Source: Piromyces finnis finn (Eukaryota > Fungi > Neocallimastigomycota). From it: a stretch of 64,000 nucleotides of DNA. Below are positions 43,182 through 57,257 of this stretch, in pieces. The translations under genes were made by a program, and so were the position numbers. Within the stretch, counting starts at the first letter, position 1. Each line of letters begins with the position of its first letter. The notes under the pieces were generated by a model. It saw only the letters and a program-made list of their open reading frames with translations. It did not search any database and was not told the origin of the DNA. The DNA lies in NCBI GenBank assembly GCA_002104945.1, contig MCFH01000015.1, positions 1 through 64,000 on the forward strand. The letters are read 5' to 3'.

Positions 43182-46100
43182 ATGGAGAATAATGATACTA
43201 ATAAAGTAATTTAATTATATTTATTTATTTATTATTATATATATTGATAAAACATAAAGAATATTTATTTAATAAATAAAATCTATTTATCTAAAAATTT
43301 ATAAATATATATATAATAAAAACTCACATTTTTTTTTAGCTCTATGCAAAATCAATAAATATACCTGTTACATCTTCTTATAATAGTTTGACTGTTGAAC
43401 ATATACCAAATTATAATAGTAATACTTTACATATTTAATAAATTGATGTAAAATATATATTTTGGTTATTCCTATTTATTATTATTTATTTACTAATAAA
43501 CATTAAACTTTTAAATATTTAAATAATATTTTGAATTTGAAATATGTCACATTATAATAGCATTTAGCTATTCTGAAGATAATTCTATTCACGGTAGTAC
43601 ATATGAAAATAATGATATTTTTAAAGAAAATATTCAATTGAAAAATAATCAATTTGATTCTTCATGTTCACTTGTATTTAAAAAAAATGATTTAAATTCA
43701 TCACATGAAATTAATAAAAGAAATAAAACATCTGCGTTATCTTCGGCACTTCGTGCATCTAATCATTTAAATAAATCTAATAATACTAATAATAAAATTT
43801 CATATGATATTAAGCAAAATGAAAGAAAATATAACACAGGAAATACAGATAATGATAATAAAGAATTATTTTCTAATAATTTAAGTGATTTACCAAATCT
43901 TAATAAAGAAAAATATAATGATTCTAAAAATGATACTAATGATACCAAATCAAAAATAATAACTGAAGACAAAAATACTGTTGGAACTGATTCTTCAGTT
44001 ATAGCAGAGAAACCTCAAAAGGAAGGAATAAATATAAATGATTTCTCACTGAATTCAACAACAACGACAAAAAATTCAAATGAATCATCCTTAATACCAT
44101 ATAATAAAGATAATAAATTAAATATTCTTCGTTTTGCAAATAGTGATTCAATCCTCTTACCAAATCAACAAGAATTTCTTCTATCTAAAAATATTGAATA
44201 TCTTAGTGTTAACACTGTACAAAATGATAAAAATATATGTCAAACATGCAAAAATAAATTAAAAAATCAATTAACTAAACCTCACCATGTGCATCATCAT
44301 GATAATTATATATCATTAGATTCACAGGTAAAGATATCAAATATTAATTCCATTGATATTATTGGTGCAGGAAATGATCGTAATAGTATAACAACAAATA
44401 CGCTAAATCGTATGTTAAATTCACCATCGTATAGTCAGGTTTCAATTGATAGACAACAACTTTCAATAGATAAATTAAATAACAAAGAAAAGACAAAAGC
44501 TATTGTAAGTTACTATGCAGACGAAAAAATAAGTAATAAAATTGATCCATCTTCTCATACACTAGAAGAATTGACCCATACTAGTGATGACACAAAGGAA
44601 AATTATATTAAAACCGAAAAAAAAGAAAAGAGAAGAGATAAAATAAATACTAAACATGATTTCATGGAATACCCATTGATTGAAAAAAAAATATATTCCT
44701 TATCTTTAAATGATAGTGATATTCTGAAGGGTAACCCAACTCCTTTAACTTCTTTAACTCCATTAAATAATACCTCAAATTTATTTGAAAATAAGATAAA
44801 ATTATTCCATCCTAAACAATCCTTTAAAAATACAGAGAAAAATAATGTCGTATCGAATGAATTAAGTAATTCACCTATAGAAAATTGTAAAAATATCATG
44901 AAAAAAAGTAGTAGTAATGACATTACTAGGAATGGTAAAAAGAATGATAGTATTGATAAAGAAGATATACTATCACTAAAAGCTGATAATAATTATAATC
45001 AGGATAGTAAACTATTTAATAAATCCTTTAATAAGGATAATAATACTAATACTAATAATGATGATGGTAATGAAAATGACCAAAGTTATGTTGATGAATT
45101 GCTTAATAATAATATTGAAAGTTCAAGAGAAGTAAAAGACAATGATATAATACCAGTATTGTCACCAACAAAAAAGGAACAAAAAGAACCAATACCATAT
45201 TTGAAAAAAGACTCTAGCTATTCTAATGCCGATATAATGCATATGGATAATAATATAAGCTTAATAAGTCTTGAAGTAGAAAATGAGGATAAAGATCAAT
45301 TACCAAGATTAGGAAATGAATCAAAAGGAAGCTTTGAAGATGAAGATGATATTAGAGCATGCTCATTTGAAAATGAAGAAGATTTAATAGATAATATATT
45401 TGATAAGGCATCACCGACATCATTACCATTGCTTCCATATGGACATCAAGTTGGAGGTCATGCACCATTTTTAAGATTTTCTGATAAAGCTTTATGTAAG
45501 TTAATGAACCCAGCGGAAAGGGCCTTTTATGAATCTGTAAATAATATATATCCTCAATTACGACCATTTATTCCTGGCTACTACGGTGTCATTAATGTAT
45601 ATTTTAATAATAATAATGGAAGCGATGGTAACAGTAATACGTGGGTAGATAATATACCTGTGGCTATCATTGAAAATGAGAATTATAGTAGGAATAATAG
45701 TCAAACTATTACTTTTGAATCGGCGGGTGATAAATCCTCTCAACTATTAAACCCATCTTCATGTAATAATTATTTAAATCATGATCATAGTTCTTGTAGT
45801 GAATGTGGAAAGCCAAATATATCTCCATTATCTCATAATAGTACTAAAGTTTCTGTAGATAATCAAACAGACAGCAATAATAAAGACAAAAGTAGTAGTG
45901 GTGGTATAGCGATTAACACTAATAATAAAAAGGTTCCAATAGAATATATATCGTCTTATACCGATGGTGAATCACGGATGGGAAATTACAATTATTATCA
46001 AAAACTTCGTGAAAAAGTATTACGTGATGCATTAACTATTCAAAATCGTCGTTATAGATACTCACAATTAAGAGCTTCATCTTTAACAAGATTAAAAAGA

Positions 46101-47165
46101 AGACATTCATTAAATGCATTAAGTAATGAATACCAAGGTTTTACACCTTTAATAGAAGATAAACCAGATGTTAAAAATACAGATGCATCAATGATAGGAC
46201 AAAATATAAATCCTTGGTCATTACATTGTCTTAATAATCAAATCAATAAAATGGGACAAAGTGATAAAGAGAATCAAAAACCTGAACAATTTATTTTAAT
46301 AGAAGATTTAACGTATGGTATGAAATATCCATGCATTTTAGATTTAAAAATGGGAACACGACAACATGGTGTAGATGCAACCCCACAAAAACGAAAATCC
46401 CAAGAAAAGAAGTGTGAATCAACAACAAGTAAATTATTCGGCGTTCGTATGTGTGGAATGCAAGTTTATAAAACTAATACAAAGACATTTGAATATTCTG
46501 ATAAATATAAAGGTAGAAAGATTGTTGCATCGCATTTTAAAGAAGGACTATTATCGTTTCTTGATAATGGTGAAAAATTACTAGTAGGATTTATACCAAA
46601 AATTGTTGAAAAATTAAAAACATTATATTCTGTGGTAGAACAATTAACAACATCTCGCTTTTATGCTAGTAGTCTTATGTTATTTTATGATGGTGCATGG
46701 GCTGATGAGGAAAATGAATCCAATTCAAATCATAATTTACTTTTAATACACAATTCTGACAATTATCTAGACAGACATAATACTAATAATGAAGATGATC
46801 CAGATTCATACTCAACGGTTCAACGTTGTCTATACAATAAAGAAGTTGTCGTTCATTTAATTGATTTTGCACATTGTACTAATGATGCCCATTTAATGGT
46901 ATCAACAGATCCTAAAAAAAGAGGTGATATAGATATCACTCAACCAGTAATTAACTCCATTACAGGAAAAGAAGAAAATTACATCTTAGTACCGTTCCCC
47001 CCAACACATAAAGGTCCCGATATGGGTTATTTATTAGGCTTAAGAAATTTAATTATGTTTTTTGAAGAAATTTATAAAGACTTTGGCGCTAACGGTCATG
47101 TTTATAAAAAGGATTACCCAGAAATATTTAATAAACAAAATATCAATTCTGAGTTTAAAGAATAG
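43182..47165 (+). CDS. KCS1: Inositol polyphosphate kinase (KCS1/IP6K-like). Main exon about 43560-47165; start probably at ATG 43182 via short upstream exons
   Basis: IPK motifs HQVGGH, FILIEDLT, PCILDLKMGTRQHG, FYASSLM, LIDFAH, and GYLLGLRNL. The track ORF begins at TTG with no in-frame ATG back to TAA 43524. ATGGAGAATAATGATACTAATAAA|GTAATT at 43182 is a plausible first exon. Confidence 0.88.
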
Positions 47166-47493: not shown

Positions 47494-49942
47494 TTAATCT
47501 ACAATTTCAAGATTTCTAATATTAAATATAATAATAATAAAATATTGGAATATTTAATTAGTATTATTAATAAACTATATAAATATTTATATATTTATAT
47601 TTAAAATATACATTTGAGAGAGTTTAGAAAGATTTTCAACAGAATCTGGAATTGGACCCTTTATTTGATTATTACATAAGAATCTAATATATTTTTATTT
47701 AAAAGGTTGATATGGATTATTTTTTTTTTTTTTTTAATTTATTTAAATAGTATTATAATATTATAAATTAATAAAAAATAATTTACAATAAAGAAAGATT
47801 AATTAAATAGCCGATAGAATCTGGGATTTGACCGTTCAAAGAATTTGAATCTAAACGTCTATTTTTATTATATTTACATAATTTAAATGTTAAAAAATAA
47901 AAAAGTACGATATATAATTTTTCTTTTTCAATTATTTGCATAATGACTTACAAATGTGTTAAATTTATTAGATTTCCAATGGAAAATGGAATTGCACCAT
48001 CTAAGTTATTATTATTAAGATAACTAAATATATATATATTATAAAATTATTAATAATAACCTTTAGAGTCATTTTAAATTATGATAATATACTTACAGTC
48101 CAATTAATGTCTTTAATTGACATAAACTTAATGGAATATTACCAGATATCTGATTGTTTTCTATATGTCTAAATATATAAATTAATAATAATAATAAAAA
48201 GTTCAATCAATATAAATATTGATAATAATAAATTAAATATTTCAATATTATTAAATATTTACAATAACGTTAATTTATTTAGACTTCCAATGCTTTTTGG
48301 TATTTCTCCATGTAAAGAATTGTTATTAAGCCATCTAATAATTAATTTATTAAAAATATTATTAATTATTAATTTTATAATTTTTAAATTAATAATTATA
48401 AATGACTTATTTAAAATAAAATAAGTTACAATCTTTCAAGGTTTTGTAGATTGCCAATAGATTCAGGAATAGTTCCATCTAAGCAATTTAAGTTAATTAA
48501 TCTTTTATATATTTGGGTGTTGTTATAAAATATAAAATTAATATTCACTTAGTACTAAATAATCTCTCTTAATAATAATAAATAATATAATTAAACAATT
48601 CTTTACAATGCGGTAAGGTTTTCTAAATCACCAATAGAATTTGGAATATTTCCACTTAATTGATTATTATCTAAACGACTATTGCATTATTATATAATTA
48701 TATAGTATTAATAAATTAAAAATAATAAAAAAAAAATTAATCCAATAAATATTTTTAGTATTTATTACATTAAATTCAAATTCTTTAATTTTCCTATTGA
48801 GCTTGGAATTTCACCGTGTAATTGATTAAGGTTAAGCCATCTTTATTTTTTTTATTTTAAATAAAAAAATATTATGAAATAAATAATAAATAAGTATTAG
48901 TAAAAAAAAAACATATTGAATTGCATTATGAGATATAAAAAAAAATAGTTACAATCTATTCAAATTTTTCATTTGGCCAATTGTTTCAGGAATTTCATCA
49001 CTTAAATGATTAATATTCAATAATCTTTTATATTAAATTATTTTAGTAATGTTAGAAAAGATTAAGTTGTCATATAATTGATATAATTTGGCATTTTTTT
49101 TATACTACAAGTATAATTTTTAAACTTACAATCCATTAAGTTTTTTCAAATTACCAATGGAAGGTGGTATACTACCGTCAATTTCGTTATTATCTAAACG
49201 TCTATATTAAAAATAATGATAATGTTTTAACCATTGTTATTATTATTTTTTTCATTAAAAATTAATAATTTTAATTGTCCTACAATTCTGTTAGATTTTC
49301 AAGTTTTCCTAAAGTATCTGGTAATGGTCCAACAAATTTATTGTTTTGCATAGAACTTTTTTTTTATAAAGTATTATAAACAATATATTAATATTTTTAT
49401 ATGTATTATTGATCCTATACTATTTAATTAATTACATGATAGTAAGTTCATATAAATTGCCAATGGATTTTGGAATAACACCTGTTAATTGATTGTTTCT
49501 TAAATATCTATTTTTTAAAAAAATGGGTTTTTTTTTTTTTTTTTTTTTAAAATTTATATTTAGAAAAAATATAAATTGCATAATATGTATATAATTATTT
49601 AAAATAATAAAGTTAATAAATAGGTATTCCATACAATTCTGTTAAATTTCTTAATTCTCCAATTTCTTCTGGGATTTTACCGCACAATTGGTTTTCTTCC
49701 AAATGCCTTTAATATATAAAAATTAACAGAATTGTTATATTAATATAAACATAAAAAGTATAATAAAAATATATTTTTTGCATACAATAATCTTAGATTC
49801 TTTAATTTTCCAATAGTAGCTGGAATAATTCCTGAAAGTTGATTGAAATTAAGCCATCTATTTTTTATAATGTTATGAAAATCCGTTATGTTATTAATAT
49901 TATTTTATATTTTTATCTAAATTAATATAATATTATATTTCG

Positions 49943-49973
<31 letters not shown>

Positions 49974-52900
49974 TACAATCTATTTAAATTTGATAAGTTT
50001 CCAATTGAAGCAGGAATCTTTCCTTCAAATTTATTAATATTTAAAAGTCTATATAAATAAAATATAATTTTATATTGTTAAAAAATAAAATTTTCCCTTT
50101 TTAATATTCAATATATGAAATAATAATATGAAAATGCCTACAATCCATTCAAGTTTACCAAATTTCCAATTGATTCTGGAATTTCTCCACTTAATTGATT
50201 ATTATCGACACGGCTGTAGCATTTAAAAAACAGATATAATATATAATATAATTAATAAAATGTATTTATTTCATTATTATTAACATTATAATATTAATAT
50301 ATATAAATATCTTACAATTCAGTTAAATTAATTAATTGACCTATAGAAGGTGGTAATTTTCCAGAAAGTTGATTATTATGAATATACCTATTATCAAGTT
50401 ATTAATTCAATTCATTAAAATGAATTTTTTATATTTCATTATTATTGTAATATGCTATTAAATAAATTTACAATCCAGTTAATTTCGATAAACATCCAAT
50501 CCATTGTGGAATACTTCCATTTAATTGATTATTTTCCAAGTGTCTATATACCAAGATTTTTTTTTTTTTTAGAAAATTAAAATTAATAAATAATTAAATA
50601 GTAATAATGTATTTTTTTAAAATTATTATTATTATTATTTCTACATACAAAATAGTAAGGTTTTTAAGTAATGAGAAATTATCTGGAATATGACCCTCTA
50701 ATTGATTAACATTTAACCATCTTTCAAAGAAGAAGAAAAATTTTAATTTCAAGATTAATAATATTACTTGATTAATATATTATTATATCTATTTTATCAA
50801 TAATTTAATATAATTAAATATTTCATTATGAATACTACTAACAATCTTTCTAGATTACTAAGATTTCCAATAGATGGAGGAATTGAACCTTTAAGTTTAT
50901 TGATATTAATTAACCTAATAAAAAAATTGATTGATTTAATTTAGAATAAATTGGCCTTATTAAATTTATTAAAGAATTAAAAAAAATTATAATTTAATAG
51001 TTTTTTAAATATTTACAATCCAGTTAAATTTCTTAATTTTCCAATACTTGCAGGGATAGCCCCAGTTAATTGATTATTATCGAGACGACTATTGATATAT
51101 ATTTATTTAATGATGCATTATCATTATAATATTTAATATTTATAATTAATATTTATAAATAAACAATTGAATAATAAAATAAATGTATTTAAAAATTACA
51201 GCAAAGTAAGATTAGATAAATTTCCAATTGAAGAAGGAATCTTTCCACTTAGCATATTATTATTTAACCATCTGTTAATTTTATTATAATATACAAAAAA
51301 AAATTAATACTATTAATAAAATATAAAATAAATAATTATATTTAATTCATACAATCTCAATAAGCTTGTCATATTTCCTATGGTACTTGGAATACTTCCA
51401 GAAAGTTTATTTACATTTAAACATCTATATTATTTATTTTTTAATATGCACATAATTAAATATATAAATAAATTATATATATATTTTTTAAAAATTTATT
51501 TATAATTTTTAAATAATTAAAAATTAATAATTACAATAAAGTTAAGTTTCTCATATTTCCTATAGATACCGGAATTTCACCTTCAATCATATTTGTATCC
51601 ACACGTCTAATATTTATAAAAAAAAACTAATCAGTATTTGATTATGGCTATTTAAAATTTCAAAAACTATGAAAAGTTATTACAATTCTTGAAGATTAAC
51701 CAAATTTCCAATATTTTCTGGTAATTTACCATTTAATAAATTATTTCTTATATATCTGTAATTAGTATAATAAGTAAATTTATGTTAACATTTAGCATAC
51801 TATAACAGCCACATATAAAAAAAATGAAATACTATTAAATATTATTTACAATCCTGTTAATGATGTTAATGAGCATATTTCATTTGGAATACTACCACAT
51901 AATTGATTATCTTCAAGATGTCTATTATTAAAGACCATTATATTATTAATAATTACTCATTTATTTCATTATATTAAATTAGTTATAAAATTTTTAATGT
52001 AATTACAAAATCTTGGCTTCCTTAAGATTTCCAATAGATTTTGGAATATGACCAGTAATATGATTAAAGTTAATCCATCTTATTATATATTTATAACAAA
52101 TTGTTTGTTAGTAATACTACAATATATAGTTAAATAGAAAAAAAAAAAGACTTAATATAATTACAATTCTGTTAATTGCTCTAATTGACCAATAGAATCT
52201 GGAATTCTTCCAGAAAGTTGATTATTATTTAAATATCTAAATAATATATAAAAATGGTATAACTTAATATATATTTTTTGCTTATAATTTCATTACATTT
52301 ACAATTATATATTCTTTACAATCCATTAAGATTTTTTAATTGTCCGATTTCTGATGGAATAATTCCTTCAATCTCGTTATTTTCTAAATGACTATTACAT
52401 ATATAATATATTCATTAATATATAAATTACAATTTATTTTCTAATTTTTTCATTAAAAGTTTAATATATTAAATTATCCATACATAAATTTTAAACTTTC
52501 CATTTCAGCAATTCTTTCCGGAATAGCACCGCTTATTCTATTATTACTTATCCATCTTTTAAAATATAAATGAATATATCAATAAAAATGAATTAAATTT
52601 ATTATATATAATAATTAATGATTTATATTTACAGTTCAGCTAATTTTTTTAAATTTCCAATAGAACTTGGAATGGTTCCATTTAATTGATTAATGTTAAG
52701 AATTCTAAATTTCCATGGTAAAATATATTATTAATAATTATTAACTATTTTCATAATAAATTTATGATAAGGGATAATAATAATTATATTCTTACAAAAT
52801 TATTAAATTGCTAAGATTTCCAATGGATTCTGGAATTGATCCAGTTAATTGATTATTATCAAGTCGCCTAATTTTTATTTATAACACTTTTATTAATAAT

Positions 52901-53653
52901 CCATTTTTTATATTAAAAATTTTTAAAAATTTTAAAAATTCTTACAATTGTAAAATATTTTCCAAGTTTCCGATAGAATCTGGTATTGAGTCTTTCAATG
53001 AGTTGTTATTTAAATATCTTTATATTATATACAGAAAAAAGTTATTCACATGTTTGTTTATTAATATTATTTTAGTATATAGTAAATATTATTTTTCTTA
53101 CAATCCAATTAATTTTTGTAATTCACCAATAGATTCCGGAATTGCTCCATCTAAATAATTATTATCTAAATGCCTATATAAATATATATGAATCAATATA
53201 ATTGAACCATACTACGATAAGTTATATTTTAAGTTTGAACAAATTACATCAAGTATAGATTTTTGAGATTTCCAATCGAATTTGGTATCATTCCTGAAAG
53301 CTTATTATTATTTAATCCACTTTTGAAAAGAAAATTAAAAAATTAATTTATTGGATATAAATCATTAATTGTATTATAAGAATTACTTACATAACTCTTA
53401 AATTAACTAAATTTCCTATATTCTCTGGTATATTTCCAACAAATTCATTATGATCCAAACGTCTATTAAAAATATATATAAATATAAAGGTATAATTAGT
53501 TATAATAAATACATTAAATAATTGTATTTATCTATTAATATATTTTTCATAATAATTACAATTTTTTCAATTCAACTAATTGGCAGATTTCATTTGGAAT
53601 GATGTGGCTTAAGGAATTATTATTTAACCATCTTTTTAGATAAAAATAATATA

Positions 53654-53684
<31 letters not shown>

Positions 53685-56600
53685 TTAAAAAATATGCTTA
53701 TTTATTATTATAGTAAAAAGTAATAAAATATTTTACAATCTTCTTAAGCTTCTTAAATTTCCAATTGATTTTGGAATAGATCCAACGATATGATTTTGAT
53801 TTAAATATAATCTTTTTAAATTAGTTAATTTTCCAATAGAATCAGGAATACATCCGGTTAACATATTTTTATCTATTTTTCTTTTTATTTTTTATATATT
53901 ACAATATTAGTAATTAATTAATCCTTAAAAATATGTTGTAGTATATTATATACTAACAAGACTTCAATATTAATTAAATTATCAATATTCTTTGGAATTT
54001 CACCAGTTAATTCATTATCAGATAAATATCTATTATAAAAAATAATATTAAATTTAATATTATAAATAATAGATTTATTATAGTATATTTTTGTTTGAAA
54101 AATTAATTTACAATTCTTTTAAAGAATATAAATTTGAAAGTGTTGCTGGTATTTCACCACTGAATCTATTATTTTCCATTTGTCTATATTAATTATTTAT
54201 TTTAAAAAAAATTATTATAATTAATATATAATTATTTTAGTATTTATATTTTTTATATTTTTTTGTATGTATTCAAAATATTTATATGTATAACATTTAC
54301 AAAATAGTTAATTTTTTAAGATTCTCTATGCCTTCAGGAATTTGACCTGAAAGATAATTATTATCCAAATATCTACCAAAGCAATAATACATTTTGTTAA
54401 TTAATATAATACAAAACTATTTTTATATATAATATATATAATAAATTAATTAAAAGAATAAGTACAATTCCTTTAAAGAATGTAAGTTTTCAATGGATGA
54501 TGGAAGTCTTCCCTCTAACATATTATTACCTAAATGACTAAATTGTTAAAGTAATTAATGATTTATTAATATTATTTTATTAAATAATAAAAAAAGTTTT
54601 AATTGCGTACAGAATTTCTAAATATTTCATGTTTCCAATAAATTCTGGAATTCTTCCTTCAAGACGATTATAACTCAAATATCTAAAAATATAATATATT
54701 TTATATTTTAAATATTTTTCATTAAAATATTCAACCTTTTTTTATACTATTATATTACAATTCTTTTAGGTTATTTAAATCTTTTAAAGCATCTGGGATT
54801 GATCCTCTCAATTTACAATTAGTTAATGTGCTAAAAAAGTATTTATAATAAGATAAAAATTTTAATAAATATGATATATATTTATAATATTGATACTACT
54901 ATAATTACATTTTTGAAATATTTTTAATTAAAGATATTGATGATGGAATCTTAAAATCATATTTTATGAAGAATGGATCGATATTTTCGGATATACTGTT
55001 AATATTACTATTTTAATTTTTATCATTATATCAATATAATTAGTTAGGAAAAAAAATTAATAATATTGGAATTAATAATTTTTTAAAAATAATTACATTT
55101 CATCATTAGTTGCATATTGTTTAATAATGCTGTTTGGTATATAATTATAATAATAATAAACGTCATTAGTCATTTATATAAATATTCATATACGATCATA
55201 AATATTATTTTACAAACATATGCAAATGCAAATATATATGTATATATTTACTTTAATGTTAATCTTGGATTTATAACTAAATTATTATTTTTTTTTGTAT
55301 TTATAGAGAAATATTCTATTAAAGAATCAACATTTTCTACAGTTAAAAAGTGCTTAGAATTTGAATTTACTAATTCATAACTTTCATTGTGGGAATTGAC
55401 GATATCCTGTTTATCTTTTACATAAACAATAAAAATTTTGTCATTAGATTTTTGAATTAACTTTGACTCCATCATTCTGATATTTGCTTGGGTCATTTCA
55501 ATGTTTGATATTATCCATGTATTTAATGGATTTTTATTATTTGATTTATTTATAAGGTTCTCGCTATTAGTAATAAGAGTATTGAAATCAATATTTTCAT
55601 AATCCATTGAATAAATATCAAAATTTGATAGTTCGTTGAAGTAATCTAACTTATTACAAGTGAAACCAATATCAAGATTTTTATTTATATTTGTGATTAA
55701 TGCTATTCTATTACTAGTATCATTTGAATAACATTCACCAATAACTGCAGGCATTAACGTTAAATTTTGATCATATTCACTATCCCAATATAAGACAATT
55801 AATATATCTGTATTTATAGCATCTGGATTAATTAACATTTTTTGGTTACGATTAATTTCAGTTAAATCTTTAATCATTTTATTCATCATATGAAGAAATA
55901 GAATATCTCTATTCATATGCTTTTTAAATTTCTTAATTTTTAATGCATCTAAATAGCATTCATTATTATCATTTATACTAAATAGTTCATAGGATGACGT
56001 AGTGAAAATTGGATACATCGAAAATTCGCTTATAATATTCATGAAAACAATATCTTCCTTTGAATCATTTACTTCTGTTAAAGATGAATCAGAACCAGAA
56101 TTATTTAAATAATTGTCTAATATAATATAAGTTGGTCTTCCTTGTTTTGCAACAGTATCAGCAATTTCTTTATAGGTTTTCAAAATTTCATGATCATCAT
56201 TTGCAATTTTTGGAATTAAAATAACTACTGCGTTTATATATTGTTTATTATTTACAGGAATATCGTTATTGTAAATAGAATAAGAATTCATACTTTGCAT
56301 AGTTTCATCTAAATTATATGTATTAATTGAATTCCAAAGTTTATTATAGTCATCTGATGTTGGTTTCTTAGTGAGATGAATAATACTATCATCATTAGGA
56401 AAATAACCGTTGATAATATATTTTAACACTTCTTTATTGTCATTTTGAGATGAACTAATATGATTGTAATTTTTATTATAAAACATTCTTATATTTAATG
56501 GCCATTGTTCATTATTTAAAAAATTTTCTGAAAAACTTTTTTCAATAGTTTCATCATTTGATAAATCTATTTTATTAATATTATAATTCTCAAATAATAA

Positions 56601-57257
56601 CTTCATACTAGTTACTAAATTTTTTGAATTTTCTAAAGAAGGACCAAGTAACATTATATTAAATATTTCATTTGTTTTATTAATTTTTAAAAAATCTTTA
56701 ATGAAAAAGTCAGATGTTACGTTAAATAAAGTTGGATAACTCTTTATCAGAGTTCCTTGATTATTATTATTGCTAATTAATCTTATAGAAATATTGTTTG
56801 GTAAATTATCTATCAAATTTTCAATAGCATATACACAATCAGATGAAGTATCATAATTATCTAAATTTAAATACTTATCACATATTGTTAAATTTACTTC
56901 TTTAACAATAACTTCATTAATTTGAATTGAACTGATTACAAAAGAATATGTATTAAAATAATTTTCACTACTAATTATGCATTTAACATTGCTTATCTCT
57001 TCAAAACAATCATTTAAAATGGTAATATAGGCTTTGACATTTTGACCTATTCCATTATAATGTTTTGCAAAAGAGAATTCAACTTTTAAATAATTATTAT
57101 TTTGTGGACAATCTTCTATATCATTTGGTTCTAATTTTACAAAAGAATATAATGAATTTTCATTTTCAATATTATTTGTAACTATTGAATTATCAATATT
57201 TAAACTGTGAGCGATTAAATCATCGACAATAAAATGACTCTCATTAAAGTTGTTCAT
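47494..57257 (-). CDS. Predicted ~1,800-aa intracellular LRR protein: exon 1 (57257-55252), linker exons (55129-55097, 55007-54909), 44 LRR exons (54830-47612), and a tentative last exon (47515-47494)
   Basis: Each LRR exon translates to a 24-aa xLxxNxLxGxIPxxIGNLxxLxxL repeat, e.g. 47787-47858 RLDSNSLNGQIPDSIGYLINLSLL and 54759-54830 TLTNCKLRGSIPDALKDLNNLKEL. All are flanked by AG/GT in phase 2. The exon-1 donor AA|GTAAAT is also phase 2. The LRR array itself is very secure; the join to exon 1 and the last exon are predictions. Confidence 0.85.
47612..54830 (-). repeat. Exon-intron tandem array: 43 exons of 72 nt plus one of 144 nt (45 LRRs), average period about 164 nt
   Basis: Counted exon by exon. 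On the + strand each unit appears as ..tac-aat....ccaat....ggaat....att(a/g)tt....ct.., separated by AT-rich introns of roughly 70-130 nt. Confidence 0.95.

Follow-up and report, generated by a model that had tools for sequence, protein, structure and literature searches.

A 669-codon open reading frame in Piromyces finnis as the probable first exon of a 48-exon LRR gene

The window analysed here is a 64,000-nt stretch of DNA from the anaerobic gut fungus Piromyces finnis (contig MCFH01000015.1, positions 1 to 64,000). On its minus strand lies an open reading frame of 669 codons (57257..55248), which is followed by a long array of LRR-coding exons. The locus raises the question of whether this ORF encodes a complete protein or is the opening exon of the LRR gene. 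The ORF ends with the sequence ...AGA TTA ACA TTA AA|G TAA AT, with the G of a possible splice donor at position 55251. The first-pass annotation had placed the stop codon inside a phase-2 GTAAAT donor; the sequence is as it described, and the GT is invariant in the six lineages compared below. Taken by itself, a stop codon within a GTAA donor is weak evidence: we estimate that about one in eight TAA stops would follow a G in this DNA. In phase 2, an intron whose donor is GTAA, GTAG or GTGA will automatically read xxG TAA, TAG or TGA when the frame is continued into it. A ciliate-type code, with TAA read as glutamine, was considered and rejected: glutamine is encoded by CAA, TAA and TAG are absent from the 669-codon frame, and the organism is Piromyces finnis.

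The reading supported by the sequence is that the 669-aa ORF would serve as exon 1 of the LRR gene, reaching the repeats by way of a 33-nt and a 99-nt exon. We consider it very probable that the ORF is the first exon of a single spliced LRR gene occupying 57257..47494 on the minus strand, with the following parts:

Exon 1, 55252..57257, minus strand: 2,006 nt, starting with the ATG at 57257; the intronless orphan head; its final AA supplies two thirds of a split codon.
Intron 1, 55130..55251, minus strand: 122 nt, GTAAAT...AAACAG, phase 2; the TAA at 55250-55248 is bases 2-4 of the donor.
Exon 2, 55097..55129, minus strand: 33-nt micro-exon, coding for (N)IIKQYATNDE(I).
Intron 2, 55008..55096, minus strand: 89 nt, GTAATT...AAATAG, phase 2.
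Exon 3, 54909..55007, minus strand: 99 nt; a lead-in and an irregular first repeat (NINSISENIDPFFIKYDFKIPSSISLIKNISK).
Intron 3, 54831..54908, minus strand: 78 nt, GTAATT...TTTTAG, phase 2.
Exon 4, 54759..54830, minus strand: 72 nt, the first canonical LRR.
Exons 5-47, 47612..54682, minus strand: 72 nt in 42 cases and 144 nt in one; each 72 nt encodes a plant-type LRR.
Intron 47, 47516..47611, minus strand: 96 nt, GTATAT...ATTAG, phase 2.
Terminal micro-exon, 47494..47515, minus strand: 22 nt including the TAA, coding for (I)NLEIVD*.

The gene so defined has 48 exons and 47 introns. Every one of the introns (47/47) is in phase 2 and bounded by GT...AG on the minus strand of the window, so that intron 1 shares the phase of all the LRR introns, as had been claimed from the first inspection. 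The exons add up to 5,400 nt including the stop codon, corresponding to 1,799 amino acids; the frame is open across every junction and the sole stop is the terminal one. Exons of 72 nt number 43 in the whole gene, in addition to the one of 144 nt. Intron lengths range from 71 to 127 nt across all 47, the donors are GTAA (35), GTAT (6), GTAC (2), GTTA (2) and GTAG (2), and the acceptors are TAG, AAG or CAG throughout. The G+C content is 11% in the introns and 24% in the exons; in the window as a whole it is about 18%, with coding stretches higher than spacers. Homopolymer runs (T or A, 20-30 nt) are found in several of the array's introns (53660-53700, 49940-49975 and 49525-49550, minus strand).

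The boundaries, phases and lengths of the exons, as well as their conservation across genera, are observations on the DNA, from which we infer splicing at the RNA level. The predicted protein would be composed of a 668-residue orphan head, a linker encoded by the 33-nt exon, an irregular repeat encoded by the 99-nt exon, 45 plant-type LRRs and a seven-residue tail. Intron 1 would then be an ordinary intron that is normally spliced out, the apparent stop of the ORF being bases 2-4 of its GTAAAT donor.

The path from the head into the repeats leaves little choice. When all in-phase, open exons flanked by AG and GT were enumerated up to 400 nt past the exon 1 donor, only three were found, namely 55129-55097 (33 nt), 55007-54909 (99 nt) and an 87-nt form of this second exon. 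The 87-nt form, which uses an alternative acceptor within exon 3, is present only in P. finnis and absent from the other species, and it was discarded. The putative branch sites to which the first-pass annotation had pointed are found where it placed them, with GACTAAT about 40 nt ahead of the AAACAG acceptor and CCTAAC and CTAAT preceding AAATAG, but they carry little weight: CTRAY occurs near the 3' end of 10 of the 47 introns, compared with 5.9 +/- 2.2 in shuffled sequences, which is a bare enrichment. The motif was consequently discounted as evidence. A yTAAT can be loosely aligned in intron 1 of six lineages, although this may arise from the alignment of A+T-rich DNA.

At the other end of the gene, the 5,400-nt total depends on the 22-nt terminal micro-exon (47515-47494). 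The first-pass annotation had arrived at the same total of 5400 nt and about 1,799 aa, on condition that its tentative last exon was right. We reproduce these figures, and the micro-exon is conserved in Anaeromyces robustus (L003) and in the metagenome lineage L004, two loci in which the surrounding flanks cannot be aligned. If the last donor were read through, the tail would be MYILNINI* in P. finnis but just M* in the other loci; the conserved micro-exon was therefore preferred. Such a terminal micro-exon is easily missed because read-through of the last donor yields a plausible short tail.

The comparison with orthologous loci provides the main evidence. Orthologous DNA was available from Piromyces sp. 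E2 (L002), A. robustus (L003) and the metagenome lineages L004, L005-L009 and L010-L011; these five loci and P. finnis make up six lineages, with at least two other genera represented. The orthologous heads are 64-74% identical to the P. finnis query. In all six lineages the head closes with AA|GT, the donor hexamers being GTAAAT, GTAAAT, GTAATT, GTGAGT, GTAAGA and GTAAGT. In L004 the 'stop' is TGA rather than TAA and the donor is a perfect GTGAGT, which fits a constraint acting on the splice site. The head is followed in 6/6 lineages by a 33-nt and then a 99-nt exon, both flanked by AG and GT, with invariant acceptors. These two exons had been proposed for P. finnis at exactly the positions given above, and they thus hold with the same lengths in every lineage; their junctions are also used by four public gene models (see below). 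Exons 2-3, and the array wherever it is covered, follow the head on every contig that is long enough.

The sequences between these exons behave differently. Intron 1 varies in length from 84 to 122 nt, intron 2 from 86 to 130 nt and intron 3 from 78 to 105 nt; the differences are not multiples of three, and stops occur in nearly every frame of the introns. Exons 2-4 have a mean pairwise identity of 0.78-0.81, and the final 99 nt of exon 1 reach 0.83; introns 1-3 give 0.64-0.67, and shuffled controls 0.62-0.65. A column-by-column inspection of the multiple alignment agrees with this contrast. For exons 2 and 3 the only stop-free frame common to all species is the proposed one, and the variable columns at codon positions 1, 2 and 3 number 5, 2 and 10 of 11 in exon 2, and 12, 7 and 29 of 33 in exon 3. 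The proposed exons thus evolve in a coding-like manner and the proposed introns in a non-coding-like manner. These comparative data, which are drawn from DNA sequence, place the pattern formed by the ORF end and the exon chain well above what chance would be expected to produce.

In P. finnis and in L004 no break interrupts the chain between the head and the final repeat, with 46 exons past the head in each, and the A. robustus chain is orthologous and ends at the same last repeat. The 144-nt double exon occupies position 10 in all loci, and the number and order of the repeats are fixed across genera, without shuffling. The points at which the automatically built chains broke are trivial: an assembly gap of 3,043 N in Piromyces sp. 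E2, and a 1,004-nt intron 5 with a microsatellite in A. robustus. This last intron (L003:12664-13667) measures 73-99 nt in the four other loci; its microsatellite is a long one of dinucleotide type that translates as ISISIS...

Could the head and the array nonetheless be two separate genes, the head being a complete 669-aa protein that ends at the TAA 55250-55248 and the LRR array being transcribed alone? The ORF forms a complete frame in the standard code, and prokaryote-style gene calls on the metagenome contigs likewise give the head alone, with 666-670 aa. The searches for transcripts would also be compatible with two genes, in that neither the metagenome scans nor a word search of the junction region returned a junction transcript. 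Individual exons were analysed singly, and searches spanning the junctions were made through public protein identifiers. A scan of the metagenome with a degenerate pattern for the spliced exon 1/exon 2 junction gave no match, and a protein-pattern scan of metagenome contigs found no relative. The word search, limited to residues 620-737 of P0001, returned genome-derived models only; look-ups of P0001 and P0007 returned no contigs, and cluster look-ups added no further members. On one contig of a public sequencing run, L009 (Logan SRR7031345, 2,614 nt), the head ORF is followed by introns 1 and 2 in unspliced form; this contig would be an unspliced transcript if the run is RNA. On the other hand, two separate genes would leave exons 2-7 as orphans, conserved, fixed in length, in frame and with coding-type substitutions, yet with no conserved start. 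Furthermore, the TGA 'stop' of one lineage preserves a perfect GTGAGT donor, conserved 3'-end signals are absent from intron 1, and four eukaryotic gene models splice across the end of the ORF. We therefore regard two genes as extremely unlikely, and the single spliced gene, with the 669-aa ORF as its first exon, is retained; it draws on the GT/AG boundaries and phase, on conservation at five loci and on a Pecoramyces model that continues from the head into 11 LRRs.

Part of this structure can be found in the public annotation. The P. finnis protein ORX52505.1 (BCR36DRAFT_286381, 737 aa) is 100% identical to the ORF over residues 1-668, and its junctions (55252/55129, 55097/55007 and 54909/54830) are those proposed here. 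After ...NPRLTL it reads N-IIKQYATNDE-I-NINSISENIDPFFIKYDFKIPSSISLIKNISK-I-TLTNCKLRGSIPDALKDLNNLKEL, which corresponds to exons 2, 3 and 4 in joined form, and it ends after exon 4 with a TTG TAA that extends into the donor of intron 4. PIROE2DRAFT_5262 of Piromyces sp. E2 (735 aa) and BCR32DRAFT_293146 of A. robustus (738 aa) have the same junctions and the same end. Two EVM models are available from Pecoramyces ruminantium (formerly Orpinomyces sp. C1A), Orpsp1_1 1185457 and 1176139. P0007 (Pecoramyces, 931 aa) begins with the head and continues by way of exons 2-3 into 11 LRRs, among them the repeats encoded by exons 5-7; P0008, from the same organism, is similar to P0007 but lacks the 33-nt exon, with the frame kept. 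The 33-nt exon is used in the public models P0001, P0003, P0006 and P0007 and skipped in P0008. P0008 and P0007 lie on different contigs and apparently represent the same gene, differing in the 33-nt exon and in a gap of about 190 residues in the head; the difference could be due to an assembly duplicate, to an allele or to gene modelling.

The shared end of the three JGI models raises the possibility that the 737-aa model is the true product, comprising the head and exons 2-4 and ending TTG TAA, and that the rest of the array is a second gene. Three independent annotations (P. finnis, Piromyces sp. E2 and A. robustus) agree on this end point, which could reflect transcript evidence and is not necessarily an artefact of the pipeline. 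In two of the three, Piromyces sp. E2 and A. robustus, a second model opens within LRR exon 8, at an ATG that lies five bases in (Q-M-ENNRF...). However, exons 5-7 are located between the two models. They are unannotated in the public models of E2 and A. robustus (L002:12488-13196 and L003:12495-14021), with their GT/AG boundaries intact; over five loci they are in phase, fixed at 72 nt and 83-84% identical, whereas the introns there are at shuffle level (0.64-0.68 for introns overall), and the Pecoramyces model reads through them. A gene that began at this ATG would split a repeat, and nothing sets the donor of intron 4 apart from the others. No conserved in-frame Met of the array comes earlier than that of exon 8; P. 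finnis has one in exon 5, which is missing in E2. The proposal that the array has no start of its own was thus right in substance. A 737-aa end product consequently appears very unlikely. Since exons 5-7 are conserved, P0007 includes them and no conserved Met precedes exon 8, the public division into a 737-aa model and another for the LRRs is an artefact of annotation. The head-LRR junctions are already on public record, while the full-length model is not; no head-bearing protein longer than 931 aa was present in the collections searched.

Given the single 48-exon gene, the frame stops one codon into intron 1 if this intron is retained, and it does so in 6/6 lineages. In fungi, alternative splicing most often takes the form of intron retention, and regulated retention of intron 1 might release a functional, head-only isoform of 669 aa alongside the full-length mRNA, as the first-pass annotation had proposed. 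An immediate stop would nevertheless follow retention of 37 of the 47 introns, and intron 1 is not singled out: its donor, acceptor and length are typical, GTAAAT being the commonest donor hexamer of the gene, and its sequence is conserved at shuffle level only. The presence of GTRA donors in all six lineages is predicted by the 37/47 usage (about 0.24 by chance). No head-only gene or paralogue was found in the P. finnis genome or among 1.84 billion representative sequences, and an mRNA whose stop codon precedes 46 further junctions would be a likely target of nonsense-mediated decay. Such an isoform is very unlikely, and of the earlier proposals it is the one that we reduce to a formal possibility. 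The wider notion, that intron 1 (or intron 4) is retained in a regulated manner to produce a head-only or head-plus-one-repeat protein acting apart from the 1,799-aa form, is decidedly improbable; if true, the phase-2 GTAA donors would represent built-in truncation switches along the array.

The head itself appears to be restricted to a single fungal lineage. A second copy was not detected in the P. finnis genome (56.46 Mb, 232 contigs), and no Pfam family was matched in the head at E <= 1. Among the 1.84 billion representatives there were no relatives outside the anaerobic fungi: the head-bearing entries were only P0004, P0008 and the 77-aa fragment P0009, and every named member of the head family comes from an anaerobic gut fungus. 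This exhaustive search returned no head-bearing protein longer than 792 aa, the remaining hits being LRR matches of a generic kind that covered the final 40 residues. The head was found to contain neither a signal peptide nor a membrane segment; the maximum 19-residue hydropathy of P0001 is 1.09 and its N-terminus is not hydrophobic. An AlphaFold model of the Pecoramyces orthologue, built with 8 sequences, has a mean pLDDT of 45, with most of the head and the junction below 50, values too low for it to place the junction peptides relative to the head and the repeat solenoid. Since the head has no signal peptide or membrane segment, we infer that the protein may be a soluble, intracellular LRR scaffold or sensor, in which the head would act as an output or anchoring module. 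Our search of the literature found no paper on this LRR gene or on LRR genes of Neocallimastigomycota.

The surroundings of the gene are conserved as well. On the opposite strand lies a convergent neighbour (43638..47165, plus strand) with an inositol polyphosphate kinase domain (PF03770, E 1e-51), the two stop codons being about 330 nt apart. A kinesin gene is found upstream in the orthologous loci, and both Piromyces sp. E2 and A. robustus retain the order kinesin, head-LRR, IPK.

The one-repeat-per-exon architecture is shared with other systems. In the ROCO genes of brown algae each 72-bp exon encodes one 24-residue LRR and the introns are in phase 2, and in gonadotropin receptor genes the LRR exons are all in phase 2 (PMC11378527). 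The P. finnis gene resembles both as described there, in that it also has one-repeat exons of 72 nt, all in phase 2. With this arrangement any exon can be duplicated or skipped in frame, and any retained GTAA donor becomes a stop. In contrast to the brown-algal ROCO genes, the head of the P. finnis protein is an orphan without ROC-COR or any other Pfam domain, and the repeats are fixed in number and order across genera and have not been shuffled. A likeness to plant-type LRR receptor proteins and kinases is seen in the 24-residue consensus LxxLxLxxNxLxGxIP, which can be read in the exon peptides, and the Pecoramyces orthologue carries the LRR families PF13855, PF00560, PF12799 and PF23598. Unlike the plant receptors, however, the P. 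finnis protein lacks a signal peptide, a membrane segment and a kinase domain, and it ends at the C-terminus with NLEIVD*. The protein thus resembles an intracellular LRR scaffold with a lineage-specific head, and is a member of none of the families with which it was compared.

The outcome of the analysis is a corrected full-length gene model, with no new mechanism. A more general caution applies to very A+T-rich genomes with phase-2 introns, where a long ORF that 'ends' in G TAA may be merely an exon; ORF callers and metagenome pipelines report such an exon as a complete protein, as illustrated by the 666-670-aa calls. For the anaerobic gut fungi, at least three proteomes divide this gene into a 'hypothetical protein' of 735-738 aa and a headless LRR model, and the split drops three conserved exons (5-7); the product would instead be a protein of 1,799 aa with a lineage-restricted head.
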